44,031 bases of DNA, taken from contig NW_024704842.1 of NCBI RefSeq assembly GCF_018977255.1, positions 124,001-168,031 on the forward strand. The letters are read 5' to 3'. This stretch comes from Callorhinchus milii. Its lineage: Eukaryota. The notes below the pieces were generated by a model that worked only from the letters and a program-made list of their open reading frames with translations, ran no database searches and was not told the DNA's origin. Of the stretch, positions 283-30,379 are shown piece after piece; position 1 is the stretch's first letter; every line of letters starts with the position of its first letter. The position numbers and the translations under genes were made by a program.

Positions 283-450
283 ATTACTGGAGATGCTGGA
301 TATCAGACAACAAAAACAAAAGTCGTTGGGCACATTCAGCAGTTGAGGCAGCAGATCTAACGAGCGGTCGTGGAAACGAAACGTTGACTCTCTTTCCTTT
401 CTCCTTAGATGTTGCCTGACATGCTGAGTGTTCCCAGAGACTTCTGATAA
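283..450. mobile_element. Imperfect palindromic repeat typical of chondrichthyan genomes (Penelope-LTR-like or MITE-like); copy at ~27345-27510
   Basis: Arm ttgggcacattcagcagttgaggcagcagatcta pairs with the reverse complement of tagatgttgcctgacatgctgagtgttcccag around a central cgaaacgttgact. Confidence 0.55.
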
Positions 451-1440: not shown

Positions 1441-1454
1441 TGGGTTGTAATCAT

Positions 1455-1730: not shown

Positions 1731-1787
1731 AGAACCCCACTTTACGGTACATTCCCACAAATATTCGTGGATTGAAACGGTACTCAC

Positions 1788-1812
1788 CGAAAATAAGAAA
1801 CAATGATTCCAT
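1788..1812 (-). CDS. Exon 1 (leader MESLFLIF) of a paralogous receptor gene that continues beyond the left edge
   Basis: Identical to 28647-28671 including the GTGAGT donor; lies in the duplicated block. Its exon 2 would fall about 50-85 nt left of position 1. Confidence 0.75.
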
Positions 1813-8604: not shown

Positions 8605-8630
8605 AATGATTCCACGCTCTTGTCTTCCAG

Positions 8631-8760
8631 GCCTGATTCAGGGAAACTCTGTGACACAGAAGGTGGCTTCAGTGACTGGGGAAGAAGGAGGAAGTGTGAC
8701 TATGGAATGTCATTATGATACGTGTCTGAGCGGCTACCATTTATATTGGTATCGAGAACA
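8631..8760 (+). pseudogene. 5' fragment of a second TCR alpha/delta V exon
   Basis: tgtcttccag|GC CTG ATT CAG GGA AAC: (G)LIQGNSVTQKVASVTGEEGGSVTMECHYDTCLSGYHLYWYRE, then breaks into poly-C/CA simple repeat. No 3' half, RSS or leader found. Confidence 0.8.
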
Positions 8761-8779
8761 ACGCTTCCCACGTGCATCG

Positions 8780-9463
8780 ACCCAACCCCCCCCCCCCCCC
8801 ACACACACCACACACACTCTCTCTGCCATCTCTCACTCTCTCTGCTCTGTTCCTCCTTGTTTGTTTCACCAACTCTGTCCCTCTCTCTGCCGCTCTCCAT
8901 CATAATCGGTCTCTCAAACATTCGCTCACCTTCACCCTCCGAATTACTCTCTCCTACCCCCGTCTCTCTCCTTGCTTGTCAGCCCTGTTTCTCTCTCTGT
9001 GTGACACTCTCTCTCACTCAATTGCTCTCTCCTTCTCTCGTACTTCAAACGCCCTCTTAGTTCTGAATCGCACATTAACTTTTTTCTAACACAAGCATTC
9101 TTTTCCACTTGCTCTCAGTTGATCTCTCTCACTCCCCCTCTTACCCTCCCGCACTCTTTCTGTCCCCTCTCACACTCTCTCTGCATCACTTTATCTCTGC
9201 TTGCCCCCTTTTTCCCGATCCCCCTAAGATTCTCTCTCTATCAATCTCTCTTTCTCAAACACGCTCATTGTTGAGCCATCCAGTAAATTAAGCACTAATA
9301 TTTCTGATTCCGATTTTCACTCACACCCCTCGTCCTTTGTCTCTCCATCTCTCTCACAACCTGCCCTGCTCTCTTTTACTCTCTCACCCTCTACCACACA
9401 GACTCTCACTCTCGCTATCTTTCTCTTAGTCGCTGATTCTCAATGTGTCCCTCACTCAGTATT

Positions 9464-9837: not shown

Positions 9838-9942
9838 CTACACTCTGACTGTGGCGTAGATTGGACCATCATTCTCACCGTTTTCATGGCCATTCTCAAT
9901 CCTGTTTCCCAACATCAGATTAGCGTAGATGATGTCAGCATT
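9838..9942 (-). CDS. Exon 12, terminal coding exon with ITIM IIYANL and ITIM-like PIYATV
   Basis: ctgtttgcag|AAT GCT GAC ATC ATC TAC GCT AAT CTG...CCA ATC TAC GCC ACA GTC AGA GTG TAG; not visible in the ORF track. Confidence 0.88.
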   Translation of the reverse strand, partial: NADIIYANLMLGNRIENGHENGENDGPIYATVRV

Positions 9943-11615
9943 CTGCAAACAGGGCAACACTCAATATATCTGCAGAAGGTCATTGGGAGTAAACCCTCCC
10001 CCACCCACCCCTCCCTGGAGACTCCGACTCATGTCTCCAGTGTGTGAGGTTGTTTGTTTCCCCTTCCCCACACCAGGAGTACTACACATGTTAAATTATC
10101 AGCAAGTGGAATCAAGTTTGTGATAAATCCCCCCGTAAATAAACCGGAGCCAACAATAATGACAATAATCTTGCGTTTAAGAAACTCCTCTGAGGTGAAC
10201 GACGCTGTTTGAACGTAAAATTAAACACAGACACACACAGACATCGAGAGTCTCTTTCTGACTCACACATACGTATACACACACACAAACACACACACAG
10301 TCACTTCCAAAAAGGCAGAAACATGCGCTCACAGAAAAACACAATCACGTAGACAGATACACAAGCACATGGTTCTGAAACTTTTCACGTTGAGAGAACG
10401 GCTGAAAGTGTTTAACAACATGTATTATAATTGGTGGAAAGTTTATGACCATAACCAAAAGGATCAGCTAAAATCAGTGAAAAATTGTTAACGGCCAGTG
10501 CAAGGGGAGATTCTCTCTTGCTTTTCTCAATATTGCCAAATTCCCGACTTTGAGGATAAAACCATGAATTTATAGCTCAAGCGCGAGTGCTTCCGGCTGA
10601 GACAGCGTGACCGATAGCCTGAGCTGGGTTGTGCCAGGCTGACACGGCTGAGCTGGGTTGACACAGTGCTGAGCTGGGCTGAGCCAGGTCTGACCTGGTC
10701 TGACACACGGCCAAAGCTGGTCTGTTGACACAGGGCGTGAGCTGGGCTGTACAGAAACTGAGCTGACACAGGGCTTAGCTGGGCTTACACAGAGTTGAGG
10801 TGAGCTGAAACAGAGCCTGAAGGTAGGCTGACACCTGGTGCAGCTGAACCGATACAGGGCCTGAGCAAGGCTGACACAGTGTTAAGCTGCCCTGACACAG
10901 GCCAGTGATGCATTCACTACTCACCATTGGAGGCACCGACCGGGGAACCTTTCTCACCGTAGCATCTGAAACAAACGGAAACTCTATTTAGCACAATTCA
11001 TTAACCGCACTATAGTTGAACAGTATTATTAAGGATATCAAAGGTTGCAGTAAATAATTATTAACGATAATGCTGATAGTAAATATTAGACCACAGTTAA
11101 TATTTTGATTAACATGGCATTTGAAAAAAACTAACTTATCACGACATCGTGAAGTCCCAAAGAGCTTCACAGGATTGACGGTGTAATGGAGTTACTGCGT
11201 ATACTGTCAATTAAACCTGGAAGACATTCATGCCAGCAGCCTCACAAGTACAAGTATGTGAACGATTTTTTCTCAGGATTGATGGCCAGATGGAGATCGT
11301 TGGCAGAGTGAGAGAGGTTCTCTTCTTGAACAGCGCCGAGGGATCTTTAATATCCTCCTAAACAGGCCCAAGTTTCCTCGGTTTATCTTAAAATCTGAAG
11401 GACGAAACTTGAAGTGGCTCAAAACAGTCAGCGACATAGAAAAAAACATGCAGACACACAAACACGCAACAGTAACACAACCTGGCACGCAGAGCGACCA
11501 AGAGAGTAGGAGAGTGGCAGACACACAGATTGGCACACACAATAGACACAGACTGACTAAGGGAGAAGGTGAGTGGAGACAAAGAGACACACAGAACAAA
11601 CGATAACGGGAGAGT

Positions 11616-11651
<36 letters not shown>

Positions 11652-14600
11652 ATGTATGAGTATTATTAAGGACTTAAAATCTTGCAATTAATAATCTTTA
11701 ATGATCATGCAAGCATTGGTGTCAGCAGCTCCAAAATCAGATGTACACTGGGCGTGAACAATTGTTTTCTGGAGGATTGTTGGACAGAGAGAGACTGTTG
11801 GCTATGAGAGACAAATTCTCTCTTTGAATTGGGCCGCGGGTTCTTCAAAGTCCACGAAAAAGGGCAGAAGGGACGTCGGTATATCGTCTCTTCTGAAAGA
11901 AAAAAAACTTGAAGTGGCTCAACTTGAGACAAGCGATTGACAGTCAGACACACAGACAATCATGCGGCAGACACACAGACAGAAACGCAGACAGACCAAG
12001 AGAGAAGGAGAGGGGCAGACATACAGATTGACACACTGTAAGACACCCAGAGAGATGAAGGAAGAAGGCGACTGCACAAGGGGAGAGACAGATCCAGAGA
12101 AAGAGAACAAGGAATCAATAGACTCTGGTTTGGGGGAAGCTCATGAGCAAGAGATTGGTTTTGTGTGGGGCTCGGGCCATCGGCTGACCAGACGAGGTTG
12201 TGATCAGCTCTTTTCACTCAGGACTCAAACCTAGGAAACTTCTCACTCACAGGTGACGTTGCTGGGTTCAGGGCCGCCTCCCGTGGGTACGTTCCTGCGA
12301 AAAAAACAGACAGATGAGAGCGAAATATTCTCTGCTGTTTTACTGAGGAGGATTGCGGTGCTCAGTCCAAGTCTTGTAACAGGGCTAACGACCAAACATT
12401 GACACTCAGCTGGAGTGAAGCGAGGGGGTGGGGAAGGTTTGTGTTGGGAGCCAGTTGTCTGAGGCTTGTGTGGAAACCCGTCACCATGGTGACGAGTATC
12501 CATACCATACGATGAATTCCAGTCATGCCTCCAATAGAAGGCAATTCCTTTTTATTTAATTAATATGCATTACATCTGCCAACCTAATCCCCATGTGGTT
12601 TAGGCACAATATGGCTAGAATCAGGGTTTAGCGACCTCACAGTATGAATTGGGATCCCACCAGCTAAAACCACACGGCTTGCTATAGGGAGCTCCGTCTT
12701 GCAATCTTCCTCTGCTTTTCGAGTTAGGAAATCTCTACCCGTTAGGGATTTATCCTGTAGTGTAGCAGGAGCTGAATAGGAGGATTCCTTACCCCCAATA
12801 TATTTTCTGCCCTCCAAGTGTTGCAAATGAGTGTGGGAGTGTACACATGTACAGACAGTTTGGAGAGAGAGCAGGGAATGGGATTAAATTGGAGATTTCC
12901 AGTGGGGTGCAAGCAACACCACAGACAGGATGGCGTGAGAGGAGGAATGGGAAGAGTATAGAGAGCTCCAGTCGGGGTGGAAGCACCTGTGCAAGCAGGA
13001 TGGGGAAATAGAATGAAATAGCGGTGAAATGTTCTCACCTTTCCCCACTTGAACTCTTCTGTTTACCTGTAATTGCAAAGGGTAACGCATGTCAAATATT
13101 GATTAGTACTGGTTGTGTATTTTTGTGGTTATATTAACAATAATCCTCCCTTTCATAGATTATTACCGTTTCATTACAAAGGGCAGTCCCTACCCAAACC
13201 CTTTCCCATCACTACCACCATCCATGGACATGCCTTCAGCCACTTCGCTACGCTATTTGTAAATACATCCCAGTTTCCATCTGATTTAGCTCTCGCTCCC
13301 ACCCTCACACCACAAGACCCATCACTTCAACCGGGTCTAGTATTTTTATTACTATTCTGTGTAATAAACACTGGCCTCAAATTGCAGTGACTCTGCTTTT
13401 TTAATGAAATGCTGCAGCCCATTGCACACAAGTGGGTAACAAAAGCGGACATGAAGTGACTGATCCATTTTATTTTGGGGATTGTTGGCCAGGATTCTCC
13501 CTTCTCTTTTCGAATGCTGCTGCAGGAACTGTAATGTCCACATGATCAGGAAAACAGGACCACGTTACAACTTTCTCACTGTGGGTACAGGCTGAAGAAC
13601 TTGGGAACAAAGTCTTGGAAACAAGAGTAGGGTACTGCACTGGATATTGACAGTAATTATCTCAATCCAAAAGTATCATTGTCGACAGCCTTTAAACATC
13701 GATATTATCAAGTACTCAAAGTTAAGGATAAAACTCATTGCCAATTTCGCTAACATAAACAACGACATGTCTTTCTAACTCAGATCCATGGTGCTGTCTA
13801 ATCTGTCCCAACAATAAATGACTTGATAAAGACTGAATGACTGTTTGGTAGCTTTGTTGTCAGGTCCCCATCTGCACTCATTGACACGCAGAATATCAAT
13901 ACAAAGTCGTTGTATACTTTCCTGTCTCCTTCTTTTGACCCACAAATATACATTAAATTCACATGACAGCATATTCTGTGAAGCGCTTTGGGACTTCGAG
14001 AAGACGGGAAAAGCGATATATCAAATGCAAGGTTTATTAATATTATTATTTATTCCCAATAACTTTAAGCCATATTCACTGATATTATTGGCCACTTACC
14101 TTTCTTATATTCACTGATTCCCAGTAGTAACACAATTATCATTAACGAAGCGACAATCCCCGCAGCCAGTCCTGTAATGTGCTTCCAGGTCCAATTTGCT
14201 GGAGAGGGAAATGACCAGAGTAATTTGTCGACTTTGAAGAGCTAATATGCTGGGAAAACCCTTTATTTTAAAGGCATCGCTGAGATCTTATCTCCTGCTA
14301 ATTTCAAAGCGCAAAAGAAGGAAATGTTTTCTCTTTTGCAATGAAAATTGCCGAATTTCCCCTCGTCTGTCTTCAAGAGAAAACTTCTCGACCCCTGATC
14401 CTGGGAAGGTTGAGCTAAATAGGGTCTCTTCTGGTGCTGCGCAAGTGAATAGCCAAGCTGCGGAAGATTGGAATCGAGGCCACACTTCATGGTGTTCCCC
14501 ATTCTTCTCCATGAGCCAGGCATGTCCCAGTATTCCAGGGAACTGCTGATAACAAAACAGTCCGGCCTGTCTCATCGTCATCAGGTTGAGGAGCAGATCG

Positions 14601-17600
14601 GACACTGGGAGCCGGATTATTTCTACGTTGGCTTTAAAAGTACAAGTCAGCGTGAGCATCTTGTTGGTATGTTGTGGGGCAAGAAGGGATAGTCTACACG
14701 ATTATGGTCAATGTGTGAGGTAGTGGTGTAAGTAACAGCTGTAATGCAAGAGCAAGATCTGGGTCCGCCCAACCTTGTCGCACTCCAAAACACACCGCGG
14801 AATGACGGAGATCAGTTCAGCAGCGATGCTTTCCGCTGTTTGCAGGAGAGAGGGTTTACACCCCAGATACGCTGTATAGGGATGGGTCGGGAATTTGGGT
14901 TTGGAAACTGTTTTATCGCGTGGATGGTTGCAGCCTGGATCAAGCAATCCAACTGAGAGCGGGAGATAACGTGGAAATATGATCGATGATATAAAGAGTT
15001 ACTGGAACAGAAGGTACTGTAAAAGATCAGAAGACAAGTAGATTTTTGTGTGAGATTATACCCAAACCTTACCGCGCACAGTGATTCCCATTCGATCGCT
15101 CGCTATTGATGTAAACACTCGTCCGTCTATTTGTGTAGTATATTTGCACGTGTAGTTTGCTGCACTGATCTCCGATAGGATGAATGTTACCGTGTTGTTA
15201 TTCTCTGGAGCTGGTTGTGATATGATAAACGCATCATCTCTGTAGAGAGAGAAATTGCTGCCAGGATAATTCCCAGAACATGAGATCTCAGCGCTTTCCC
15301 CTCTCACAAACACCCGGGAATCTGGCTTCAGCGAAATTTTGGCTTTCTGGAGCGGATCTGGAATAAAAACACAGTAAAGATCATCTCACAAACATTCGCT
15401 CTGTGAATAGAAACGTTTCAGGTTATAGCATAAAGGACCATTTGCTTCTTCCCATCCTGGTGAAGGTGTCTGGACGAAGTGAAGGTTTTGAGGGGCAGTT
15501 TCAGGGCAAACTCCAGCAGTCGTTTCTTTAGACAGAGGAAGGGTGCACAGCGGCTGACAGCGGAGTGGCCACGGAGGGCAGTGAGGCCGGGCAACTAACT
15601 AACAGCTTCAGCATGAGACGGCCGAACGGTAATTTAATCTGAACAGCACGTGTGATTTTCAGCAGTGTTTTAAACAACAGCGTAGGGTGTCAACCAACGG
15701 ATCAAACTTAATTCTGGAGCATCGACTTCACACAGAGGGAAATGGGATTGTGGAACTCGCTAACTGAAGCTATGATTCGATCAGATAGTCCAGATACATT
15801 CCAGACCTAATCACACCTTCATTTGAGTGAGAGGGACATATAGGATTTTGAGGCAGTGGGAGTGTGTGAGGCAATGAGCGACAGAGGAATAGGACGTTTT
15901 GGAGGGTGTTAGGAATTTGGAAGCAGAAATAGACGGTGTGGGATTAATAGAGTTTGTGAAAGGCAATGGGGTTGCGGTAGGTTATCAAGGTTTGTGAGGG
16001 AGGGTGGAAAATTGGTTGAGGGAGGCAGTGAATGTGAGGAAGGATGCGTGCTGTTGGAAGTGAGGGATTCAGTTTGATGGAGGAAGGGAGCAATGCAGAT
16101 AATCTGGTGTAAAAAAGCTAGTAAAATAAGATATTTATTTGGGGAGGAGAATTTTCCAGGGCTGCAGCGAGAGAGTTTGGGAGTGGGATTTAATCGGCTA
16201 GCTACTTCAGATTATCTGGCAAAGGAAAGATTGACAAATTTGCCTCCTTCTGTGCTGTATGATTCCATGATTAAATAAAATAAAGTGAGGATGGGGCGAA
16301 GGCGTGATATGATCGCAGTGACTGGACACTTGGGGCAATGAATACCACTGATGAGAGAGTTCAAGATCTCGCTCTTCCACTGATGAGAGAGTTCAAGATC
16401 TCGCTCTTAACCCACTGATGAGAGAGTTCAAGATCTCGCTCTTACCCCACAAAGAAATTCCCACTCGTTTGCTCTCTGGTGATGTGAGCTCGCGTGCGTC
16501 TTTATGTTTAGCATATTTACACGAATAATTCCCTGCACTGATCTCCGATGGGGCGAATGTTGCCGTGTTGTTTTTCTCATGAGTCGACTGTGATGACATC
16601 AACTTCCCTTCTCTGTATAAAGAGAAATTACTGCCTGGATAATTTCCAGAACATGAGATCTAAGCGCTTTACCCTCTCACAAACACCCGTGAATCTGGCT
16701 TCAGGGAAATGGTGGGTTTCTGGAGCGGTTCATGAATTAAAGTAAATATAATCTCACAAACACACACTTCGTGACATGAAAACAGTTCAGTTCAGACGAA
16801 CACTGTCTATTTTCTTATTTCTCAGCCTGAAGGATTCATCGTGAAGACTGGGAGAGGCAAGGGTTAAGGGACAGATTAAGGACAGGCCCGAGCATATGCT
16901 TCTTTAAACCTAGGGAGGGGACAACGGCTGGCACAGGGGTGGCCATGGAGGGCAGTGAGGCCGTGGCCTGATATTCCACAAAGCTATAGCCAGGGACCTG
17001 TGACAGGGAATACAGACAGAAACTCTCAACTGACCTTCAGACGTATTTAAATAACAGGATACGATCACATCCAGGGGACCAAACAGTAAATGTAGGAGCA
17101 ACGACTTCACACAGTAAAGTGAGATGGTGGGAATCATTGACTGAAGCGGGATTGGAATAAGACAGTATAAACACATTCAAGATGTCGCAAGACTTTCATA
17201 GGAGGGAGAGGAGATAAAAGATGTGGGAGGGAGTGAGGCTGTGGGAGAGAGTCAGTGTTTCGGAAAAATAGAGTGTGGGGATGGAAGCAATAGAATGTAC
17301 GTGCGGATGAGGAATAGAAGTAATGAAAGGTTGGGGAATAGGAAGTGTGAAATGAATTACGGGGGAAAGTGAGGAATTGAAGTAGACTTGTGTCATTGAG
17401 CATTTGGTACATGTGTTAGGATGGGTGGGCGGCGGGATGGGGGACAGTGGTAGTTGGAGGGCAGATCTGTGATCAAGGCTAATGTAATGCAAGTGGCAGC
17501 GAACGGCCATTTAACAGATTCGTGAGAGAAACGCAAACTGGTTATTATGTAAAATCATACCCAGATCTTACCCCACAAATAGATTCCCACTCGTTCGCTC

Positions 17601-20600
17601 TCTGGGGATGTGAACTCTCGACCGTCTATATGTGTAGTATATTTACACGTGTAATTTCCTGCACTGAAATCCGACAGGGTGAAATTTGACGTGTGGATGT
17701 TTTCCTGAGTTGTCCGTGATATGAGAAACTTGCCGTCTATGTATAAAGAGAATATGCTGCCTGGATAATTCCCAGAACATGAGATCTGAGCGCTTTCCCC
17801 TCCCACAAAGAACGGGGAATCTGTCTTCAGGGAAATGATGGCTTTCTGAAGTGGATCTGAAATTAAAACACAGTAAAGGTAATCTCACAAACACTCACTC
17901 TGATCTGATCTGTGACAGTGAACATCAGTGTCGACAATAAGCCCAGCCTCACCCTCTGAGACTGTTTCTCTCTGAGGTTTAATACGAGGCAGAAATGTGG
18001 GTGGTTCCAACTACGTGTCTTGATTTGACGCTGCAATTCTTCCGTATTGAAACACTTTTTGATGTTTGGGTATGTCTTTCTGTGAGCGAAGAGTCAGTGT
18101 TAGCTCGGAGTCAGTGTGAGCTCTGGATCAGTGTGAGCTCGCGATCAGTGTGAGCTCGGGGTCAGTGTGAGCTCGGGGTCAGTGTGAGCTCGGGGACACT
18201 GTAAGCTGGAGTTGCTTATAGCCTTGACTGCCTGTTCAGGTAGTGGTAACAAATCTCATGACGATATTCAATAACCGAAGGGATTCTTTTTCTGTTGCCA
18301 TTGCCAACAATCCCCAAATTAAATTTGATTGGCCCTACACTCCACCCATATCAATGGCACGTTGTTGCAGTTGTGGTCTATACCTGAACAGAATATGCCA
18401 CCGTCCTGCCCGTGTCCGCAGTCAGGCCGACCAACCACAGGCCCCGATCCTTCTCCAAAGCGAGCGTTACTTGAGACTGATACAGCAAATCCACATCCCA
18501 AATAGTTACAAATATATCCTGCCATCTCCATGTTCAGCGTCTCGCCACAAACTGTTCTCCAAGTGTCATAGTAGTACAGCTCAACTCTCCCCACACACCG
18601 GCTGTCTCCATTCACCAGTTTGGGTGGGTTACCTCCTGCCAAGTACATACAATACAATATCCACAGCAACAACTTCAAGCGTATGTGCAATTAACACAAT
18701 CTGTACCCTCACAAACAGCGGACGTTTGACCCTGGGTTAGCAGAGATGGTGAGACACACGTATAGCAGAGGAGGTGGGAACCTGGGATAGTAGATGCTGT
18801 GTGACAATGGGTTAGCCGAGGATGTGTCACATTGGGTTAGGAGGGAATCTGTGACACTGGGTGAGCCTGAGAATACATTGGAATATACAGCAGAGAAACA
18901 TTCGGCCCAACTGGTCTATGACGTTAATCACTCCCTGATTTCACTTTTCTGTTTTTTCTCCCCGCCCTGTGAATACCTCGAGTTTTAATAGCACCTCACT
19001 TGTGCTCAATCCCCTGCGCTCTCTCCCTTTGCTGATCCCCCTTTGGCTCAACACACTTGTACTCAACAACCTCGTGCTCTTACACAACTTGCTCTTACCC
19101 ACCTGTCCTCAACCCCACTGTGCCTACCGTTCCTGTTTACACACTCTCTGCTCACCCTCCTGTGAAAACCGCCCCGTAAACATCCCTTTGATTACCCCGC
19201 CCCCCGCCCATGGGTGATAACTTCCCTACTCCACAATATGCGGAATCTCACCTGCTCATTCACAATTTACCCACTATGGCCAGTACACTTACTCATATGC
19301 TCAACTCCCACGCCCCACACCCACCCCACCCTGTGCCACTCCTGGTTCTGCCCCCTGTCTTCTGCCCCAGTGTTCACCAATGCGCTCAACCCATGCTCAA
19401 ATTTACTTTCTCAAACCGCTGTGATCACTACCAATGCATCCCGCTCCCCGGTGCTCTGCATGTACCCCAGTGCTCATACCCTGTGCTCAGCCCCAGTATA
19501 CTCACCTCCCTCTCTACTCATCGCCTGTACTCACTTTTCTTCCGCTGCTCTCTCCCTCTGTTCACCCTGCAATACTCTCCCCCTCCCCTGTTCTTACACA
19601 GCCTGTGCTCTGTCTTCTTGTTTTGAGGCCCCTGTGCACACACCCACCGTTTCTTATCCCACACGTGCTCACTCCACTGCTGTGCACTGCGTTCTTGTTC
19701 TGAACCCCTGTTGTACTCACCCCCNGTCTGCTCAACCCCTGGTTCTCACCGCCTTGTGACCCTCGTGTGCTTTCGACTCTGTGCATTTCCATCTTGTGTT
19801 GATCCTCCTGCTTTCCACCATATGCTTCCCACCCATATGACCACTCCGTCATTTAACTCTCCTATACTTCCCTCTGCCCTATGATTACCTCACGTGTATT
19901 CACCACCCGACTTGTGCTCATTCCACTATGCTCTCCGCCTTTGCTTGCCTTCCCTTTTTCTCTTCCCACTTTTACTTAATCCTCCCCTTGGGCTCTTAAC
20001 TTCTGCACTCTTACCACCGCCTGTGCTCAACGCCACTATGACTGCATCCCCTATTTAGAAAGACAACGCTCACAATCCCTCTGCGTTACGCCAGACCGGG
20101 CGCTGCTCCCCGCTTGTTGCCACCCACCTGTGCTCGCCATTCGTGCTCTTCATCCAGGATTCACCTCCAAGCGCTTCCCCTCTGCTCAACCCATCCTTTT
20201 GCTCGCCATTGTGCTGAATCCCCCTTTTCTTATCCACACTGTGCTCCTCTTACCCTGTACAGTTAACTCACTTTGCAGTCTATTGTGTGAAGCGTTTTGG
20301 GATATCCTTCCAAGAGCATTATAAAATGCAAGGATTATTATTATTACTCATCCCTCCTGTGCTCACACCCACCCATGTGCATTAACTCTGTGATACGCCC
20401 AATGTGCTTAACCCCTGATCTTCCCGATAAGCTCACCAACACATATGCATTCCCCGGTTACCACCCCTTGTTCTCCACAAATTGTTTGAAACAGCTCACT
20501 CACTGCCTCAAATTCCCCTGCTCATCGCACTCATGCACACCCAATCGCCCCGGGCTCTCCCTGCATGTCTACTCATCTCTCTGTGCTCTGCCCCACTGTA

Positions 20601-23600
20601 CTCAACTCCCTTTGCACTGCAACACTGTACTCACCCGCCACTCCCGACCCCCTTTGTACTTCCGCTTCCCAGGGCTTAGACCCGGTGCTCACCTTCCTTA
20701 TGCTCAGCCCCCTGTGCTCAAAACCATATGGGCTCACTCCCCTGCTGTGCACACCCTCCTTGTGCTTATTCCACTGTACTCGCCCAACCTATACTCAACT
20801 CCGCTTCATGCTCCACACTCCGTGTGCTCAGTACATCCACTGTCTGCCCTACTGTGCTCACCCTCAATGCGTTCAGATGCTGAGATCATCATCCCTTGAG
20901 CTCACCTTCTCCTCAGCCCTGCTTTGCTCACCATGCTACACGTGCACACCACTGGGCTCGCACCCTGTGCCCCCGTGTGCTCTCCAGCGAGCATACCGCA
21001 TGTACTCCCCACCCTGTGCTAAGCAATCCTGTTCTCCAAACCCTCTGCTCATTCCCCCACTGCGCTCAACGAACCATGCTTATTCCACATTTATAGCCCT
21101 CTCCTCACCACACAATTTTCTCGGCCCTTTGTGCTAACCCCAAACCCAGTGTGCCTATTCCCCTTGTGCTCAATGTTCCCTGAGCGCAAATCACTGTGCT
21201 ATCGCTCCAAGTATTCAACCCTGTAGTTAACCGCTGTCCTACACCACCATTTGCTGACACTCTGCGATCATTGGCGTTGCTCACAACCTGGGATGCCCTG
21301 CCCTGTGTTCACCCACTGCGCTCACCCACGCTGTGCTTACGCACCATGTACTCCTTTCCAGTTTACGCACTCGCTTGTGCTCAACCACAGGTCTCAGCGC
21401 CCTTTGGCGACCTCCTAACCATCCCCTCGCTCACACTTGCCCTCACCCCAAGCACGAGGTTATTCTAAAAGATAGACTTATTTAACTGAGCAAATGACGC
21501 CGACATCGTATGTTTTGGATTTGGAAAATTGATCACAGTGCTATGAGCGCAAACACTCCACTCAGGTTTAATAATAAACTAACATATTATGGGATACAAG
21601 CTTTAACAATGTTTTTCGATCCGCAGTTTTCCGAAAACATGAGGAAAGAAAAATGATCGAAGACTGAAATATTTACCTGAACAGATGACGCCGGCATCAT
21701 AGGAGTGTGGCCAGGAATAGCCACCACCCCAGGGCTGTGACAGACAATCCCTCAGAGTAGACTCACTCCCTCTGCACCGGACATTCCACGTCACAACGGG
21801 ACCTGAGCCTTCACCAAAGTGAGCGTCTCCTGATGCTGAGAGCGCGGCTCCACAGCCCAACTCCTTACACACCACAGACGCGTCCAACATATCCCAACCA
21901 TCGTCACCAGAGCCAAAGCCATTCACTGTGCCCCACTGTCCATTGCGAAAAACCTCCACTCTCCCGGCACAGGGGCTACCGCCATTCACCAACCTCAAAC
22001 GATCTGCCAAAATGAAATAAAATCTGCCACACAATCACTGTAAGACATCACGCAGAATATTGAACGTAATCGAAGGTAATACTTCACAAGGTGCATGTCG
22101 CATTGCGAGGATTTCTGGACGGTAAACAATACAACAACAATAATAATCATTATAATGGTTCCAATGACCGTTGGCTACATACAGTCCAAAACCCGGGTAT
22201 CAACAATAATATTAACAATTCATTCTGCGGCTACATATACCCGTTGCAGCTGCCTTTGGAACAGAAGGATAGAGCTTTTATATTATTATACTGAATATTA
22301 TATTATTATACTTTATACAAGATTATTATAATTTATATAAAGATAGGAGATTCCCCCAAAATATGGCAGTTGTTTATTGCTTTGTTACAGAACACATTAA
22401 TGCGCATGTGTTACTGAAAGAATAGTGTGTAATTTTCTCTGTCGTCAATTCATTGCGGAATATTATCCAAACATCACATTTTGGTGCTTCATTAAAGTTA
22501 TTTTAAGTGTATCTCATCAAGGATAGGCATTGCTCTGGAGTACGTCCACGACTCTAAAACAATAAGAGCTTCCCGAAGAGGTAAAATCGTTCTACATCAA
22601 TTGTGTATTGCGCTCTGGCAGATACAAAGATGCAGATATTGTTGTTTTATTATTGCATTAGCAGCTCGCTTTTTGTTGTTTGAATATATGTTTGTGTGTG
22701 TATGGGGGTGTGGGGGAGTCGCGGACGCATACAATGCACCATCACACACAACACGAACGAACCCAGGCACAGACACTAGCACAACCCCAACTCCGGCCAA
22801 AGCACCTCGCCCCGAGGACACAGCCCTCACCCACAGCGCCAGAGCACAGCCACTCCCCAAGGCACAGACACCACCGACAGTGCACAGTCGCAACAATACA
22901 AAACAGAAGACATCCCCTATGGCACAGCAACCGTCCACGGGGAATAATCAAACCCCCAGGTTACACAGACCCTACACAAGGAAGCCCCACCCCAGGTAAA
23001 GGCAGATCCAGACAAAGACCGCTCTCCCTGGTACAAACCCCTCACAGGTAACAGCAACTACTCCCACCTCCGATAGCTGCCTCTCAGGCTCATCGGTGCG
23101 CTGCTTCGGCACAGTGCTCTCTTGCCCTGCCCTACCAACGAGGGCACAGCTTCCCCACAAGGTACAGCGATCTTGAACCCCTGCAGAAACCCCACACCTG
23201 CCCCCCGGTAGAGCCCTCACTGCCAAAACAAACCCAGGGTCCACCGACCACTTCCCACTGTACAGGCCCCACCACAGGCTCATCTCTTGACCCACGTCAC
23301 AAGCCCCACAATTTCACATCCCCACAGGATCAGCCACCCACCCACGGTACAGAGACGCCTCAGAGGACAGTCCCTCCACAGAGCACCCAACCTGACACAG
23401 CGCGATGGATGGACAGCCGAACTCCAAACGTACAGCACCCTACCAGTCACAGTCCATTCCCAGAGCACAGTCCCCAACTGTCACAACCCCATTCCGTCAC
23501 AGGCATCTCCCGGAAACAGCTGCTGCCCCAGAGCACAGCTGCCATCCAAGGTACAGCCTCCCCAACGTGCACAGCCTCCTCCAGAGCAAAAGCCCTCCAC

Positions 23601-26600
23601 GCCGTTTTGCTCAAACCCCTTGTATCCTTACTCATCCTGTGTACAACTACCTCTTGCTCACCCAACCTGTTGACACACCCATCGGTTTACACCTTTGTGT
23701 TCCCACCCATACTCACCCCATACTCCCCGCGTATGCACAAACCCCAGGTGCTCCCCGTCTATTCGTACCACCCCCGCGCTCCCCATGTTCTTTACCCAAA
23801 ATTTTGCTCGTGATCCACTGTGCTCTTCACTCCGGTTGTCATCCTCTACTTGTGTTGTGTTTTATTTTTGTTGTGTGTTGCGTTGGGGGGCGATCCGACC
23901 TCCCAACCGGACTCTCGCTTCGCCGCGAGTCGCTTCGGTCTCGCGCACCGACCGAACCCGACTCCCGTCCCCGCGCTCACGCGACGAACGCACGAGACGT
24001 CACGGAACAGGGCGGTCTGTGCCGCCCTCTGACGCGCCGGCGGGGAATTAGCTCAGATGGTAGAGCGCTCGCTTAGCGTGCGGGAGGCGGCGGCGGGGTC
24101 GATGCCCGCATTCTCCAGCGGGTCCCCCCCCCCTCCTTTCACGCATAATCGTTGCGTTCAATTGTTTAAGGTGTTTCTCCTGTATAAATGATGACTTTTA
24201 CCGACCAGGAACATTTCTGTTAGGAACGCCTAATAATAATCCCTTCAAAAACCAAAAACAATAATTAATTGGTCATTTTCAATCCACGACTGTTTGTGGG
24301 ACATTGCTGTGCGCAATTGGCTGCCGCGTTCGCCCACAAATATACAGTCAATTCACTTTACAGTGTGTTCTGTGAAGCGCTTTGGGACGTCCTCCCGACG
24401 TGAAAAGCGCTATATCAAATGCAAGGATTATTATTATTATTATTATTATTGTGCTCACCGTCTATTATTACGCCCTGTGCTAACCATGAGCGCTCCCTCC
24501 CTCTGTTCCTCCCATTCTGATACCTCCATGTGCTCCCCGATGTGCTCAGACCCCTGAGCTCAAAACCTCGGTGCTCAACACCTCTGGCCAAATTCTCCCA
24601 ATATGCTATCCCCAGAAACGCGTCCATTTTACACCCCGTGTTTAACCAAACCAGAGTGATCAACACCTTCCCTGTGCTCATCCACTCCTCTGCTCAGCTC
24701 ACGAGACTCACATCTTCGTCCTAAACCCGCTTGTTTTCCTCACGTGCTAAACCCAAATCATTCTCATCCCGTGTCCTTAAACCCCCTTTGCTCGACACAC
24801 CTGTTCTCAACGCATGTGTTACCCTTCATGTGCTCTGCCCTTTGTGCTCACTGATACTCAACTCAACCCTCCGTACTCACCCCATTGTGCTCATCCCCGA
24901 AAGTGCTCACACCATTTGCTCACCCCTTGTGCTCCACCCCTGTGATGTCCAATGTGCTTACCGACCCTGTGTTTAACCAAATCCTGTACTCAAATCCCCG
25001 GTGTTTACCTCTACCGTGCTCATTACAAGCCCCGTGGTCACCACCAGGCCCATCGCGCATCCACCGTATGCTAATCCCTCCTCTATGCTCACTCCTACTG
25101 TACTCAGCCCATTGTTTTCTAACCCCATGTTGCACCCCTTTGTGCTATCCACGTCCCAACTGTTCTCACCTAACTCCGAGCGCTCAATGCTCCCTGTGCA
25201 GAACCCAAATTTGCTCAACTCCTATGCTAAACCTCCACGTACTTAGTCCCTCTGCTCAACCACCTTGGACCCTCCCCCCCATACTCTGCCCCTTGTGGCA
25301 GTCCCTGTGCTCAGCCGCCTGTTCTCAACACTGCCCCCAACCCGTGCTCACCCCACCAAACGACCCACTCGGAAAACGACCTGATGATGATCGACAGATT
25401 TGTTTAACTAAGCAGATGACGCAGACAACATATGTGTGCGACCCGCATTTATGTCCCTAGGGCAATGAGCGTGAATCCACTCCTTCCCACCAACCCCTCC
25501 ACACCAGATTTAATAATAATACACTGACATATTGCGGGTTACAAACTTTTACCAGAATCTCCCTAATTCTAATTCCTATTGAGACATTGAAAAATCATCA
25601 GACAATGAATTAATTACCTGAGCAGATGACGCCAGCATCAGAGGAGTGTGACGAATAATAGTGACGCCAGTTCTCTGAGGAACAATATCTTAGTGCATAC
25701 TCACTCCCTTTGCACCGAACATTATACGTTATTATGTGACCAGAGCCCATCCCAAAGTGAGCGTCTCCTGAGGCTGACAGCGCGGCTCCACAGCCCAACT
25801 CCTTACACACCACAGCCGCGTCCAGCATATCCCAACCAGAGTCACCAGAGCCATAGCCATCCACTGTGCCCCACTGTCCATCGTGATGAACCTCCACTGT
25901 CCCGGCACATCGGCTGCCGCCATTCACCAGCCTCACACTCACTATAAAACACCATACGCAACATTGAGAGTCCGTTTCGTTTTGACTTCCAGTCACTCAG
26001 GATAATATAATATAATGTACATGTACAGAAAAGGTGTCACATTGGGAGGATGTTTGGCGTTAAAAAAATACAACAACAATAATAATCATTATATTGGTTG
26101 CAGTGTTTGCTGGCTGTACACGACCCAGGTGTCACCATAAGAGTAACAGGTTATTGCAGTACCAGCTGTACATGTTGCAGCTCCGTTTGCAGATAAAGGA
26201 TAGTGATATTATACTTTATCTTATTATGCTCTACATTATTATACTGATATTGGATTATTTTACATCATATTGGACTGTTATACTTTATATTAAACTATTC
26301 TAGTCGATATTACAATACTATACTCTATGATAGATTATTAAACTTTATATTTAGATTTACGGTCAGGACACAATTTTACACAAGTTTCCTCTATCCACAT
26401 GCTTCTGTTTATCTAGCAGTCAGTGGGAACCCAGCAGTCAATTGGCGTTTCTTTTCTGGGGATAAGAATCCCTTAAAAAAAATGTAATTTGGTCATTCAA
26501 TCCATGAACTTTGTGAGACACCACTGTGTGCGATTGGCTGCCGTATATCTCCAGCAAAGCTAGCAGCTGTTTCATATTGCAGTATATTCTGTGAAGCATT

Positions 26601-28671
26601 TTGGGACCCGATAAGGCTCTAAAACAAATCCATGGATTTTTATTATTATTATCATAGTTTATATTAGATTACTACAATTCGTATTTCATTATTAAACGTT
26701 GTATTATATATTTATTCTTCTACTTTATATACGATAGGAGATTCCACACAAACTATGGCCATGGTTGACTGCTTTGTTACATAATATATGAGTGCAGATC
26801 CCTCAGAGCAGACTCGCTCCCTCTGTACTGAACACCATACTTCAGAATAAAGCTTGGTCGATTTGGAAGGTCTTCAAAAGCTAACTGAACATGCAGAAGG
26901 AATGGGCAAGGCACAGGGATTGAGGAACAGTGATAATATTCCCAAAGCAACATTTGATTGTTAGATTTTGTGTCACTAACCTGCAGATTCCACAGACTTT
27001 CTCTCCAGAAGTATTACTGTACAAGGGAAAAAAAGACCAAAGCAGGAATTATTGGTAAAATAATTCACCCAAAAATCTGCCGTCACATAACCGTTCCTTG
27101 GCTACAGGCAGCCACTCAAGTTCGCCGTCAAAAAGATCATGAGTGGGGGAGCGAACACCAGCGCAAATACAATCGGGAAAAAAGGAACAGAGATTGGGAT
27201 TATTGTAGAGCGCTCCAGTTGGGGAGCGAACACCATCACAGACACCATGGAGAGAGCGCACAATAGGACTGTACAAAGATAACTTTCACAGACTGACAAG
27301 CATACGATTGGGCTGAACGGCATTTTCTGCGAAAGAAAAAAACACAAATTACTGCAGATGCTGGATATCAGACAACAACAACAAAAGTCGTTGGGCACAT
27401 TCAGCAGTTGAGGCAGCAGATCATACGAAGGTTAGAGGAAACGAAACGTTGACTGTCTTTATTTTCTCCTTAGACGTTGCCTTACATGCAGAGAGTTCCA
27501 AGCGACTTCTGATTTTTGTTTTCTGAGCAAGGGCCGTTTGTGTTTCTGTTTCGCTTTGGAGGCTTGGGAAAGAAGCGATTTGCTGACCACTCACAAACTG
27601 AGAAATTTATGTATAACAGACAGAGCAGATTGTGTCTCTCTTTCTGTATCAAGTGTGCTTACTGGCTGTTGTTTTTCCTGGTAGCTTCTGTTCCGTTAAC
27701 CAACAATAACAACTTGCATTTTGGCATCTTGCATTTATAAAGCAATACGTTAATGAGGGAAAGCATAGAAATGACTTTCTCGCCTCACTTTCCACTTTCT
27801 TCTTTCTTAGCTTTTGCACTAGACCCTCCGGCCTCTCCAAAACAAACAAAAAATTAAGGAGCCTGTAGGACAAAGACAACTAAGGTGATCGGACGCACGT
27901 TCAAAGGGAAGAGTGTTCAGATTTATCTTGAAGGAAGCAAGGAAATGTTGAGGGAGTGGGACTGCAGAATGTATTCCCATTGGATGGTTAGAGAGTGGCT
28001 AAATGCTCGCCCGTCAATGTGGGGCTGTGAGGTGGGAGACGTGAATCAGGCTGGAGTCCGCTGAGCTGAGAGAGCGGGTAGATTGATAAGGCGTAGGAGG
28101 TCGCAGATGTAGGGTTGTGTGAGGACATGGAGGGCTTTCAATGTGAGTAACAGGATCGTGAACTGTATCCAAGGATGGGGATGATACGGTCACAGAGACT
28201 GGTGGAGGAGATGACACCAGCTGCAGGTTTCTGGATGATCTGCAGTCGATAGAGGGTACAGATTTTCTTTCTAACTGTCTGGCTTGCACGACTCTCCGAA
28301 TGGGATGTAATCATAAATACTAATTCTTGCATTTGATATAGAGCTTTGATGTCTTCAAGACATGTCTAACGTGAATTCACCTTATATTTGTGGGCGAAGT
28401 GCGGTTGGCAATTGCACATAGCAGTGTCCTACAAACTGTCGGTGATTGAAAATGAGCAATACAGCATTGTTTTGTTTAGGAGCGGTTATTATCAGGAGTA
28501 TAGAGGAGAAATTGCCCAAGGGTTCGCCCTGCCTGGAAAAGGAAAAAAGTGTCTCGCTTGCAAGGCGATTGCTCTAACCACAGAGCTACAGAACCCCACT
28601 TTACGGTACATTCCCACAAATATTCGTGGATTGAAACGGTACTCACCGAAAATAAGAAACAATGATTCCAT
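9838..28671 (-). CDS. Multi-exon gene for a type I membrane receptor: leader-SRCR-SRCR-SRCR(short)-Ig-Ig-TM-ITIM tail (616 aa when the dead Ig exon is skipped)
   Basis: Exons 28671-28647, 27016-26981, 25941-25618, 22003-21677, 18635-18384, 17856-17572, 15357-15073, 14198-14100, 13066-13039, 12294-12251, 10965-10925, 9942-9838. All have GT/AG boundaries. Phases 1,1,1,1,1,1,1,1,2,1,0 join into one open frame of 1851 nt ending in TAG. Confidence 0.85.
10600..10900. repeat. Degenerate minisatellite (gctgggctgacacag-like)
   Basis: Repeated gagctgggct / ctgacacag motifs in intron 11. Confidence 0.7.
10925..10965 (-). CDS. Exon 11, cytoplasmic (YATVRKVPRSVPPM), completes ITIM VTYATV
   Basis: tttgtttcag| acceptor, ATG|GTGAGT donor; 41 nt, phase 1->0. 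Confidence 0.8.
12251..12294 (-). CDS. Exon 10, cytoplasmic (RNVPTGGGPEPSNVT, ends in first base of ITIM Tyr codon)
   Basis: ttttttcgcag| acceptor, CCT|GTGAGT donor; 44 nt, phase 2->1. Confidence 0.8.
13039..13066 (-). CDS. Exon 9, cytoplasmic (GKQKSSSGE)
   Basis: ttgcaattacag| acceptor, AAG|GTGAGA donor; 28 nt, phase 1->2. Confidence 0.75.
14100..14198 (-). CDS. Exon 8, transmembrane exon
   Basis: ANWTWKH-ITGLAAGIVASLMIIVLLLGI-SEYKK; no charged residue in the core, GxxxG present; tttccctctccag| acceptor, AAG|GTAAGT donor; 99 nt. Confidence 0.9.
15073..15357 (-). CDS. Exon 7, membrane-proximal Ig domain (C2/LILR-FcR-like)
   Basis: DPLQKAKISLKPDSRVFVRGESAEISC...ANYTCKY...SIASDRMGITVR; tttattccag| acceptor, G|GTAAGG donor; 285 nt, open. 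Confidence 0.92.
15470..16100. mobile_element. Decayed LINE fragments shared with 16860-17500 (part of the duplicated Ig cassette introns)
   Basis: Shared blocks ggagggcagtgaggcc, cgacttcacacag, g(ga/tg)gaa(ctcg/tcat)..actgaagc and G-rich L2-like sequence in both inter-Ig introns. Confidence 0.45.
16345..16443. repeat. 3 x 32-nt tandem repeat at the donor of the dead Ig exon
   Basis: ccactgatgagagagttcaagatctcgctctt at 16345, 16377 and 16412. Confidence 0.95.
16446..16730 (-). pseudogene. Dead Ig exon (middle copy of a triplicated Ig cassette)
   Basis: Same 285-nt length as, and clear similarity to, the flanking Ig exons. Acceptor reads ...ttcatg| (no AG). In-frame TAA (16671-16669) and TAG (16662-16660) stand where exon 7 has GAA/GAG. 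Donor GTAAGA is intact. Confidence 0.9.
17572..17856 (-). CDS. Exon 6, Ig domain 1 (C2/LILR-FcR-like)
   Basis: DPLQKAIISLKTDSPFFVGGESAQISC...GNYTCKY...SPESERVGIYLW; aatttcag| acceptor, G|GTAAGA donor; 285 nt, open. Confidence 0.92.
18094..18195. repeat. 6 x 17-nt minisatellite
   Basis: tcagtgtgagctcgggg units at a 17-nt period. Confidence 0.95.
18384..18635 (-). CDS. Exon 5, shortened SRCR domain 3 (internal deletion removes C5-C6)
   Basis: [28 protein letters not shown]...ICNYLGCG...FGEGSGPVVGRPDCGHGQDGGIFCS; cttggcag| acceptor, G|GTATAG donor; 252 nt, open. Confidence 0.9.
18990..21450. repeat. Degenerate C-rich minisatellite (ctgtgctca-ccc); paralogous tracts at ~23600-23830 and ~24470-25350
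   Basis: Dozens of tgtgctc/tgtactc motifs with strong C/T strand bias. Confidence 0.8.
21677..22003 (-). CDS. Exon 4, SRCR domain 2 (group B, lacks C2 and C7)
   Basis: [27 protein letters not shown]...DAGVICS; ttttggcag| acceptor, G|GTAAAT donor; 327 nt, open. Confidence 0.95.
22740..23590. repeat. Degenerate CA-rich minisatellite (cacagcac-like)
   Basis: Repeated cacag/acagc motifs; produces spurious Pro/Thr-rich ORFs. Confidence 0.6.
24042..24117 (+). tRNA. tRNA-Ala(AGC)-like gene, probably variant or pseudo
   Basis: GGGGAATTAGCTCAGATGGTAGAGCGCTCGCTTAGCGTGCGGGAGGCGGCGGCGGGGTCGATGCCCGCATTCTCCA: acceptor, D and T stems pair, anticodon AGC; 3-nt GCG expansion in the variable loop; intronic and antisense to the receptor gene. 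Confidence 0.75.
24220..24450 (+). mobile_element. Headless SINE body and tail (further copies near 13860-14050, 20270-20347, 26420-26660, 41070-41245, 41480-41700; minus-strand tails near 33840-33920, 37560-37650, 39190-39250)
   Basis: tgtttgtgggacattgctgtgcgcaattggctgccgcgtt...gtgaagcgctttgggacgtcc..gtgaaaagcgctatatcaaatgcaagg(att)n; resembles the SacSINE1/DeuSINE 3' region as I recall it. Confidence 0.75.
25618..25941 (-). CDS. Exon 3, SRCR domain 1 (group B, lacks C2 and C7)
   Basis: VSVRLVNGGSRCAGTVEV...VVCKELGCG...VRCKGSE..LRYC...DAGVICS; ttttatag| acceptor, G|GTAATT donor; 324 nt, open. Confidence 0.95.
26981..27016 (-). CDS. Exon 2, 36-nt second leader exon (VILLERKSVESA)
   Basis: Strong pyrimidine tract tcttttttttcccttgtacag| and donor CAG|GTTAGT; phase 1-1; completes a signal-peptide-like segment. 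Confidence 0.8.
28316..28590 (-). mobile_element. Paralogous copy of the same SINE in intron 1 of the central gene
   Basis: Matches 1455-1730. Confidence 0.7.
28647..28671 (-). CDS. Exon 1, first part of leader (MESLFLIF)
   Basis: cgaaATGG good Kozak context; ATG GAA TCA TTG TTT CTT ATT TTC G|GTGAGT consensus donor. Confidence 0.8.
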
Positions 28672-29565
28672 TTCGAGAGTGAGGAGGAGCTCGAGTCAAA
28701 TACAGAACCTGGAGGATTGTGTTTGTGTCCGACGGGGAAGGATCTCTACAGACTTAAATCACACGGAGTAATTCTCAGGAGAAGCTTTTGACAGTGTCAC
28801 CCTGCTCTGTGATCACCAAGCATCCACTTCTCTGTAACACTTGCATCGAAAGCTGTTGTGACACACACACTGAGGAACAGTCTGACACACACACACATAC
28901 ACACACCGAAACAGACACACTGAGCTGCGATAGACACACACACACAAACACACACTCAGAGAGGAACACGAACTGTGACTTACAGATGTATATTTAACGA
29001 CGTTTAGAGACGGAATCAGAGACTCAGAAACTCTCTCTCCCTTAATCTCTCTCTCTCTCTCCGCAGAACGAACAGGATATGTGATGTCCTTTACTGGAAT
29101 CGTTACAACACTCGCACACAAACCGCAAGCGTGAAGCTGATTCTCAGAAACTGCAGAACGTTATTTAAGTGCGGTGAGCAATGCTCCGATTGGGAGCTGT
29201 GAGTTGAGCTGGACACCCAGCGCTGAGTATTTTGTGGAATGAAGAAGTAGGTTCTTCCTGGTGTCACATTGGCCACTTCTCCATTTCTGTGTGCAAAATT
29301 CTGCGTGTTTGTGTTCGTCTACAAATACACATCACAACATATTTCATTAATTCCCGTGAAAAACTTGGACGGATTCCACGCAGCAATGAATCCTGGAGTC
29401 AAATGTAACAGTACATAGACAGGAGAAATCACACATTTACGTTCTCAGTTTAGCCTCTTTGACGGATTACCTACTTCCTCATTTCAGTTGCTCACATTTT
29501 ATCTTTTCTTGCGACATCCTTCTTTCCTTCCCCGCAGTATTTCAAGGCATTGATTGCTGATTAAT

Positions 29566-30070
29566 GCCCTGCATAGATCAGCGTAGATTTATTGGGTTAT
29601 TACCAGAGATGAAGGGGATGAGTTTCCAGTGTAGGCTGACCAATTTGGGCCTTTATTCTCTAGATTATAGATGAATTAGCGGGGATCGTATAGAGTCCAA
29701 TAAGATCATCAAAGGGCATGATAGAGTAGATAGTGGGAGATTGTTTCCCCTGATTGGAGAAACTAAAACCTTGGATCACATCCTTAAAATCAGAGGCCAG
29801 CCCTTTCGCACTGAGTTGAGGAAGAACTACTTCACTCAAATGATGGTGAATGTATGGAACTCACTACCCCAAAGGGCTGTTGACGCTCAGTCCCCGAACA
29901 TATTCAAGACTGAGATAGATAGATTTCTTACTGCAAAAGAGATTAAGTGATATGGGGATAAGGCGGGGTCAGGTTATTAGCTGGAGTTAGATTAGAAGAT
30001 CAGCCATGATTGAATGGCGGGGCAGGCTCGAAGGCCCTAATGGCCTAGTCCTCCTCCTACATGTTATGGT
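29566..30070 (+). mobile_element. CR1-type LINE 3' end, paralogous copy
   Basis: ORF 29741-29950 is the CR1 ORF2 C-terminus; near-identical to 2703-3205. Confidence 0.85.
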
Positions 30071-30306
30071 ATGTCTCCATCCGTCTGTTACTATCACAAT
30101 ATCTGTCACACACACATTGTTTCTCTCAGATTCCCAGTCTCTCTCCATCTGTGAATCTCAAAGCTTCGTTAACACACAAACTGTGACTCTCACAAACTCT
30201 CTGTCACTCACTCTCACAAACCCAAGCCGACTCTCCCTCTACATCTCTCAAACACTCACTCATACTCCCCATATTGTTCCCTCACAATACCAGTCTGTCT
30301 TAAAAA

Positions 30307-30343
<37 letters not shown>

Positions 30344-30379
30344 CATATACAGACCTGATCAATTTAAGGTGTATTCAAG

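Follow-up and report, generated by a model that had tools for sequence, protein, structure and literature searches.

The stretch of DNA analysed here (the window) consists of 44,031 nucleotides (nt) from the elephant shark Callorhinchus milii, positions 124,001 to 168,031 of the forward strand of contig NW_024704842.1 (assembly GCF_018977255.1), and is vertebrate DNA with about 45% G+C. Its minus strand carries an intact gene of 12 exons between positions 9838 and 28671, which mark the final nucleotide of the stop codon and the first of the ATG, respectively. The gene corresponds to the NCBI model XP_042201732.1 (P0152), which was reached when the last immunoglobulin (Ig) exon was searched against all proteins of the library. 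An exact protein-to-DNA mapper placed this protein on the window in 12 exons without any mismatch, and all introns had GT-AG borders. The predicted gene product is an inhibitory receptor with the layout of a type I membrane protein. Its cytoplasmic tail of 72 residues contains the two ITIMs (immunoreceptor tyrosine-based inhibitory motifs) VTYATV and IIYANL and the C-terminal motif PIYATV, while the helix of the transmembrane (TM) exon, ITGLAAGIVASLMIIVLLLGI, contains no charged residues. Pfam detected three SRCR domains and two Ig domains in the product and nothing else. NCBI lists the protein as 'deleted in malignant brain tumors 1 protein-like' (DMBT1-like), a name that reflects the SRCR part only. 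On the C. milii genes this label masks a family of inhibitory immune receptors, which is already present in the public annotation, though under misleading names.

The exons are listed in Table 1. The original prediction, made from the letters of the window without database searches, held that the leader was split into two exons, the second of 36 nt, and that the phases after the TM exon ran 1>2 with an Arg codon split AG|G, 2>1 with an ITIM Tyr codon split T|AT and followed by GCT ACG GTG, and 1>0 before a terminal ITIM exon. The exact mapping reproduced all of these features.

Table 1. Exons of the receptor gene and one pseudo-exon, in positions of the window. Phases are given as start>end.
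Feature	Position	Strand	Description
Exon 1	28671-28647	-	25 nt; ATG and initial 8 1/3 signal-peptide codons; end phase 1; donor gtgagt
Exon 2	27016-26981	-	second leader exon, 36 nt, 1>1; sequence VILLERKSVESA
Exon 3, SRCR domain 1	25941-25618	-	324 nt, 1>1; Pfam SRCR 4e-26
Exon 4, SRCR domain 2	22003-21677	-	327 nt, 1>1; Pfam SRCR 1.7e-27
Exon 5, shortened SRCR domain 3	18635-18384	-	252 nt, 1>1; Pfam SRCR profile matched from position 1 to 63 (of 100)
Exon 6, C2-type Ig domain 1	17856-17572	-	285 nt, 1>1; Pfam ig/Ig_2
Ig pseudo-exon	16737-16450	-	two in-frame stops (..VRG*SA*ISC..); passed over by the gene model
Exon 7, C2-type Ig domain 2	15357-15073	-	285 nt, 1>1; Pfam Ig_C19orf38/Ig_2; top PDB match LILRB2
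Exon 8, TM	14198-14100	-	99 nt, 1>1; stalk of 9 residues, uncharged helix, EYKK
Exon 9 (tail 1)	13066-13039	-	28 nt, 1>2; ends ..GAA AG|, Arg codon split AG|G
Exon 10 (tail 2)	12294-12251	-	44 nt, 2>1; ends ..GTC ACC T|, first base of the ITIM Tyr
Exon 11 (tail 3)	10965-10925	-	41 nt, 1>0; starts AT GCT ACG GTG, completing VTY|ATV
Exon 12 (tail 4)	9942-9838	-	phase 0, terminal; 102 nt (9942-9841) and stop TAG (9840-9838); IIYANL, PIYATV

The junctions of the tail exons had consensus splice signals, with the acceptors ttacag|, tcgcag|, tttcag| and ttgcag| and the donors |gtgaga, |gtgagt and |gtgagt. Only one set of junctions left the frame open across all four tail exons, and this was the frame of the original prediction. 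A paralogue on scaffold MU249884.1 had TM and tail exons of identical lengths (99, 28, 44, 41 and 102 nt). In a comparison of the two copies the tail exons were 96.8% identical without a single insertion or deletion, while the introns were 92.4% identical with 224 gap positions. The predicted model XP_042201732.1 is favoured by its good splice signals and open frame, the same tail in the paralogue, and the better conservation of the exons than of the introns. Other Callorhinchus proteins of the family end in ..SNVT-CE (P0004) and ..ENLT-CEFR (P0072; compare ..ETITYAVL in P0116), as would be expected from read-through at the T|gtgag donor at the same tyrosine. A phase of 1>0 for the 44-nt exon, together with another upstream exon, was ruled out by the exact mapping of P0152, and a 37-nt candidate for the second exon (27326-27290) fitted neither the phase nor the model.

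The first two tail exons together (12251-13066, minus strand; 28+44 = 72 nt) form a phase-symmetric cassette. In the Callorhinchus proteins P0025, P0009 and P0036 the TM exon is joined directly to the third tail exon, and the cassette is missing together with the first ITIM. This short, KIR-like tail could be due to alternative splicing or to variation among paralogues. An internal duplication (11258-11595 and 11754-12092, minus strand) of about 70% identity, which contains exon-like acceptor sites, is located in the intron that separates tail exons 2 and 3. In the ectodomain, the third SRCR exon (18384-18635) has 252 nt compared to about 325 nt, and its truncated domain adjoins the first Ig domain. 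The Ig pseudo-exon (16450-16737) lies between the two Ig exons in use and shares about 80% DNA identity with both; in the paralogue P0297 three intact Ig exons are in use.

The leader and tail of the shark gene were compared with the lengths published for the coding exons of LILRB1 and LILRB2 in human and macaque (PMC12827074, Suppl. Table 6). In these genes the leader exons have 34 and 36 nt, the latter being exon 4, and are followed by four Ig exons of 288-303 nt, stem exons of 72/54 and 51/48 nt, a TM exon of 126/129 nt, and tail exons of 76, 38, 53, 156 (or 126) and 147 nt (PMC12827074). The lengths total a multiple of three, and the form with 126 nt gives the LILRB1 protein of 650 residues. 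Phases computed from the lengths were 1 throughout the leader, Ig, stem and TM exons, followed by 1>2, 2>1, 1>0, 0>0 and the terminal exon. A 36-nt second leader exon of human LILRB1 and the same series of tail phases had been put forward for comparison in the original prediction; the published lengths agree with the former and yield the latter. The second leader exon of 36 nt, the phase 1-1 domain exons, the uncharged TM segment and the tail phases are thus common to the shark gene and to LILRB1 and LILRB2 (and mouse PIRB). The last exon of LILRB1/2 also resembles that of the shark gene in carrying two Tyr motifs, the final one being xIYATx near the C-terminus. The first Tyr motif lies at the 2>1/1>0 junction in both, which for LILRB1 is presumed from the exon lengths and the protein sequence. 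In contrast to the shark gene, the LILRB genes have four Ig domains, no SRCR domain and two separate stem exons. Their tail exons of 76, 38 and 53 nt differ from the shark exons of 28, 44 and 41 nt, an additional 0>0 ITIM exon of 126-156 nt is present, and the coding part of the first leader exon is 34 nt long compared to 25 nt in the shark.

Closer correspondence was found in turtles. Among the distant matches of the Ig search was Pelodiscus sinensis P0138 (XP_075773579), the second half of which is a receptor with two Ig domains. Searched against the PDB, these domains had PIRB as the top match (4e-49), followed by LILRB3, LILRA6, LILRB1 and KIR3DL1. The best 120 matches to the turtle protein were all from turtles, and its closest relatives carried automatic names after LRC (leukocyte receptor complex) members; the names given to the turtle LRC-type genes were LILRB1, TARM1-like and IGSF1-like. 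Both XP_075773579 (L002 6001-36484) and the Chrysemys model P0200 named 'LILRB1' (L003 3001-39785) fuse two neighbouring LRC-type genes, as is evident from a complete tail with a stop-proximal exon that is followed by a new leader. The Pelodiscus gene has a 36-nt exon 2 and tail exons of 28 nt (1>2, ..AG|G), 26 nt (2>1, ..GTG T|AT) and 38 nt (1>0), and its terminal exon of 162 nt is in phase 0 and contains LTYTEL and VLYATV; the split Tyr belongs to the motif TVY|AL. Chrysemys gene 1 has a TM exon of 111 nt and tail exons of 28, 44, 38 and 93 nt, the 44-nt exon ending in ..T|. In Chrysemys gene 2 exon 2 has 36 nt, the TM exon 129 nt, and the tail exons 28, 26, 38 and 144 nt.

The turtle LRC-type genes and the shark gene thus agree in the 36-nt exon 2, the four tail exons, every phase, two exon lengths (28 nt and 44 nt), an Arg codon that is split AG|G and a Tyr codon that is split T|AT or T|AC. 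The order of the three Tyr motifs is also the same, with a spacing of the last two of 23 residues in the shark and 24 in Chrysemys gene 2, and a final xxYAT[VI] lies a few residues before the stop; the terminal exon of the turtles has the motifs xTYAxL and xLYAT[IV]. There are also differences. The turtle ectodomain consists solely of Ig domains, whereas the shark gene has SRCR domains as well. Mucin-like stalk exons, one to three in number, occur in two of the three turtle genes; a separate stalk exon is absent from the shark gene. The motif with the split Tyr is the non-canonical TVYAL[AM] or PVYASN in turtles and the canonical ITIM VTYATV in the shark, and the third tail exon has 38 nt in turtles but 41 nt in the shark.

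Several other receptors served as controls. A turtle FCRL-type gene (Pelodiscus P0126; best PDB match FCRL5 with 3.6e-25) had leader exons of 31 and 39 nt, and its tail consisted of a 122-nt exon (1>0) and a terminal exon with both ITIMs. The SRCR-Ig gene of the bowfin (XP_066566105; Amia ocellicauda CM071093.1, L005 2001-21438) also had leader exons of 31 and 39 nt, with one cytoplasmic exon and without the LILRB-type tail pattern. Salmon NILTs have a single leader exon of 46 nt, then a 1>0 exon of 44 or 50 nt, followed by an ITIM exon in phase 0, and ITIM-bearing exons are described as always being in phase 0 (PMC3022915). CEACAM1 has its ITIM and its immunoreceptor tyrosine-based switch motif within one exon (PMC2832619). 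For the leader of the FcR family a rule of 30/21 nt has been given (PMC2413239), which the shark leader of 25/36 nt does not follow. The 36-nt exon 2 discriminates modestly, since this exon has 39 nt in the turtle FCRL-type and bowfin genes and 21 nt in the FcR family. The original prediction had named a phase pattern generic across unrelated ITIM receptors as an observation that would speak against it. This was true of the last two tail steps, the 1>0 exon and the phase-0 ITIM exon, which are generic because salmon NILTs show them. It was untrue of the rest among the controls: the whole fingerprint is not generic, being absent from the turtle FCRL-type gene, the bowfin SRCR-Ig gene, salmon NILTs and CEACAM1.

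The affinity of the Ig domains was examined by sequence comparison. A single shark Ig exon gave weak matches to solved structures, with LILRB2 first (E 0.025). A profile of 31 Callorhinchus Ig domains matched PIRB (1.6e-14), LILRB2 (8.5e-9), NKp46 (2.3e-8), LILRB1 (3.2e-8) and OSCAR (7e-7) in the PDB, with FCRL5 (8.1e-6) and FceRI-alpha (9e-5) at lower ranks. In a tree of 82 Ig domains the Callorhinchus domains were on the side that contained all turtle LRC-type domains (SH-aLRT 89) and were the sister group of the even-numbered Ig domains in the SRCR-Ig proteins of bowfin and carp (SH-aLRT 86). In the approximately unbiased (AU) test, calculated from 99 columns, grouping with the LRC type had a p value of 0.62 and a likelihood slightly above that of the free search. 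As judged from these sequence comparisons, the Ig evidence leans towards the LRC without deciding the matter.

From the combined evidence it was concluded, with a probability of about 0.62, that the skeleton of the shark gene apart from its SRCR exons shares descent with the LILRB/PIRB-like inhibitory receptors of the tetrapod LRC. This skeleton comprises the two-exon leader with a second exon of 36 nt, the phase 1-1 domain exons, the tail with its AG|G and T|AT splits, the 1>0 adapter exon and the phase-0 exon with two Tyr motifs. Homology of the tails of the shark gene and of LILRB-type receptors is likely, and the pattern suggests that the split leader and the four-exon tail with split codons predate the split between cartilaginous and bony vertebrates. 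On this view exon shuffling would have added, or retained, the three SRCR exons, each of phase 1-1, after the leader and ahead of the Ig exons. It had been proposed that the stalk as well as the tail is homologous to the LRC. Leader and tail are in agreement with this, both in the primate exon lengths and in the turtle genes. The part on the stalk was not supported, because the shark gene has no separate stalk exon and its TM exon directly follows the last Ig exon.

The exon layout and its agreement with the LRC genes of turtles and primates were observed, while homology, expression, a ligand and signalling of the shark receptor are inferred. By analogy with LILRB, KIR and PIRB, binding of a ligand by the SRCR/Ig ectodomain would bring the tail near to Src-family kinases, and the phosphorylated ITIMs would then recruit the SH2 phosphatases SHP-1, SHP-2 or SHIP and damp activation of the same cell. 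The uncharged TM segment, the two canonical ITIMs and a third Tyr located 23 residues after the second would, by the same analogy, be compatible with recruitment of a tandem-SH2 phosphatase.

Several observations weigh against common descent with the LRC receptors. The structure of XP_042201732.1 is a computational prediction. The T|AT split of the LILRB1 tyrosine at the 38/53 junction is what we take to follow from the published lengths and the LILRB1 protein sequence. LRC receptors have an ectodomain of Ig domains only, and here three SRCR exons are located between the leader and the Ig exons; we know of no described LRC receptor with three SRCR domains. The difference between an exon 2 of 36 nt and one of 39 nt is a single codon, and the bowfin gene with its strongly LRC-like Ig domains has 39 nt. 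A word-based protein search with the tail alone (P0152 residues 512-616) returned Callorhinchus paralogues only, so that the homology rests on architecture and short motifs. The 1>0 exon and the phase-0 ITIM exon are, as stated above, common to unrelated receptors. In the flanks covered by the window no LRC framework gene was in view, and the contig carrying the gene is unplaced and 168,031 bp long. The specificity of the cassette for the LRC type was judged from few controls, the tails of mammalian FCRL1-6, FCGR2B, PECAM1, SIRP, Siglec and CD300 being outside the comparison, and given this, the tail pattern could be older or wider than the LRC.

This last point leads to a different explanation of the match, in which the tail plan is an old module of the whole FcR/FCRL/LRC superfamily, or else a mobile ITIM-tail cassette, and the resemblance to LILRB is not specific to the LRC. 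The FcR and LRC families are thought to have a common ancestry (PMC4016189), and the Ig tree is compatible with an affinity to FCRL: grouping with the FCRL type cost 2.7 log-likelihood units and had an AU p value of 0.43, so that the test rejected neither grouping. The original prediction had called for an Ig tree; the tree did not group the shark domains firmly with a non-LRC family, but it also left LRC and FCRL undivided. The cassette is phase-symmetric (28+44 nt in the shark, 76+38 nt in LILRB, 28+26 or 28+44 nt in turtles), and its absence from the three Callorhinchus proteins named above indicates that tail parts come and go. The generic last two tail exons point in the same direction, and SRCR exons have evidently been shuffled into the Callorhinchus receptor family. 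However, the single FCRL-type gene that was mapped has neither the cassette nor the split Tyr, the second leader exon of the FcR family has 21 nt and not the 36 nt found in the shark, and the preference of the Ig profile for the LRC amounted to about 10 bits per domain. We therefore regard a superfamily-wide or shuffled tail as somewhat unlikely. If it were the true explanation, the tail would still date from early jawed vertebrates, but it would have no tie to the LRC.

It could also be argued that the resemblance arose by chance or convergence, as cytoplasmic exons are short and the phase combinations few, and that homology-guided prediction helped by choosing LILR-like junctions. All gene models compared are computer predictions, and the two turtle models with fused neighbouring genes are visibly wrong; phases are of only three kinds, and ITIM motifs are short. 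Nevertheless, the shark tail junctions have consensus splice signals in a unique open-frame combination, and the paralogue exons are free of insertions and deletions, whereas the introns contain many. Shark and turtles moreover coincide in the number of tail exons, all four phases, two exon lengths (28 nt and 44 nt), the splitting of an Arg and a Tyr codon, and the way in which three Tyr motifs are ordered and spaced. The chance of such a coincidence was estimated at well below 1 in 1000, a rough value that assumes independence and is not a formal test. Chance or convergence was accordingly considered very improbable.

Descent of the skeleton from a common ancestor with LILRB-type receptors would bear on an acknowledged open question, namely when, and from what, the families of the LRC arose. 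In a survey of 2014 neither sharks nor lamprey yielded LRC homologues, and the origin was dated to bony fish (PMC4016189), while an analysis of 2019 considered the time of origin still unclear and the status of the fish genes uncertain (PMC6557307). Literature searches yielded no usable explicit statement on a 36-bp hallmark of the LRC, on split ITIM codons or on LRC genes of sharks beyond the papers cited here. Ig-domain sequences, which are short and highly diverged, cannot settle the matter. Intron positions are an independent and slowly changing character, and two codons are split at the same base in the shark, in two turtles and, as judged by exon lengths, in primates. If the pattern is absent from FCRL and the other ITIM families, it would provide a simple marker for LILRB-type inhibitory receptors across jawed vertebrates, and LILRB-type receptors would have originated before the split between cartilaginous and bony fish.

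Receptors of other known systems share parts of this layout. KIR3DL-type genes have leader exons of 34 and 36 nt, Ig exons of phase 1, and a 1>0 exon of 53 nt that precedes an exon in phase 0 carrying two ITIMs. In contrast to the shark gene they have no 1>2 and 2>1 exons, no split tyrosine and no SRCR domain; the short tail of P0025 is comparable. Group B SRCR proteins such as DMBT1, CD163/M130 and SSC5D resemble the shark gene in having one exon per SRCR domain and strong Pfam SRCR matches, but the shark product has neither a CUB nor a ZP domain according to Pfam, and it has Ig domains and an ITIM tail. In mouse FCRLS, Ig domains that are FcR-like occur in the same protein as a scavenger (SRCR) domain (PMC2413239). 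It differs from the shark gene, as judged by its description, in being soluble, in belonging to the FcR family with its 21-nt leader rule, and in having neither a TM segment nor an ITIM tail.

The SRCR-Ig receptors of bowfin and carp (XP_042588924, P0077) are similar to the shark gene in that SRCR domains and C2 Ig domains are encoded on phase 1-1 exons of one receptor, and the bowfin protein's Ig domains are LRC-like (PIRB 1.3e-23). However, the SRCR and Ig exons are interleaved in these fish, and the bowfin gene, besides its 31/39-nt leader, has no canonical ITIM in its single cytoplasmic exon. SRCR-Ig hybrid receptors may be an old fish family rather than an oddity specific to chimaeras. 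A further, rather improbable idea is that the LILRB-type gene, recognisable by its 36-nt second leader exon and by its four-exon tail with AG|G and T|AY splits, dates back to the last ancestor that cartilaginous and bony vertebrates have in common, in which it would have encoded SRCR as well as Ig domains. The tetrapod LILR, PIR and KIR would then derive from an SRCR-Ig hybrid that lost its SRCR domains, and the shark, bowfin and carp genes would be survivors.

Outside positions 9838-28671 no further C2-Ig exon and no recognisable gene of the receptor family was found in the window. A segmental duplication was present, in which positions 1-5442 and 27066-33386 were 90-95% identical. The duplicated block includes a second, identical copy of exon 1 at 1812-1788 (ATG..TTTTCG|gtgagt), and this indicates that the next tandem copy of the gene begins at 1812 and exits the window at its left end. 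Directly downstream of the receptor gene and on the opposite strand, the open reading frame 8606-8902 (plus strand) matched the V-set profile weakly (Pfam E 5e-4; ..VTMECHYDT...YHLYWYREQ..). In the intron between the first and second SRCR exons ARAGORN predicted a tRNA-Ala(AGC) at 24042-24117 (plus strand). Next to it is a repeat (24226-24448) of about 220 bp with copies at 41031-41248, 41474-41693 and 1448-1640, and the tRNA call and the repeat together look like a tRNA-related family of short interspersed elements rather than a working tRNA gene.

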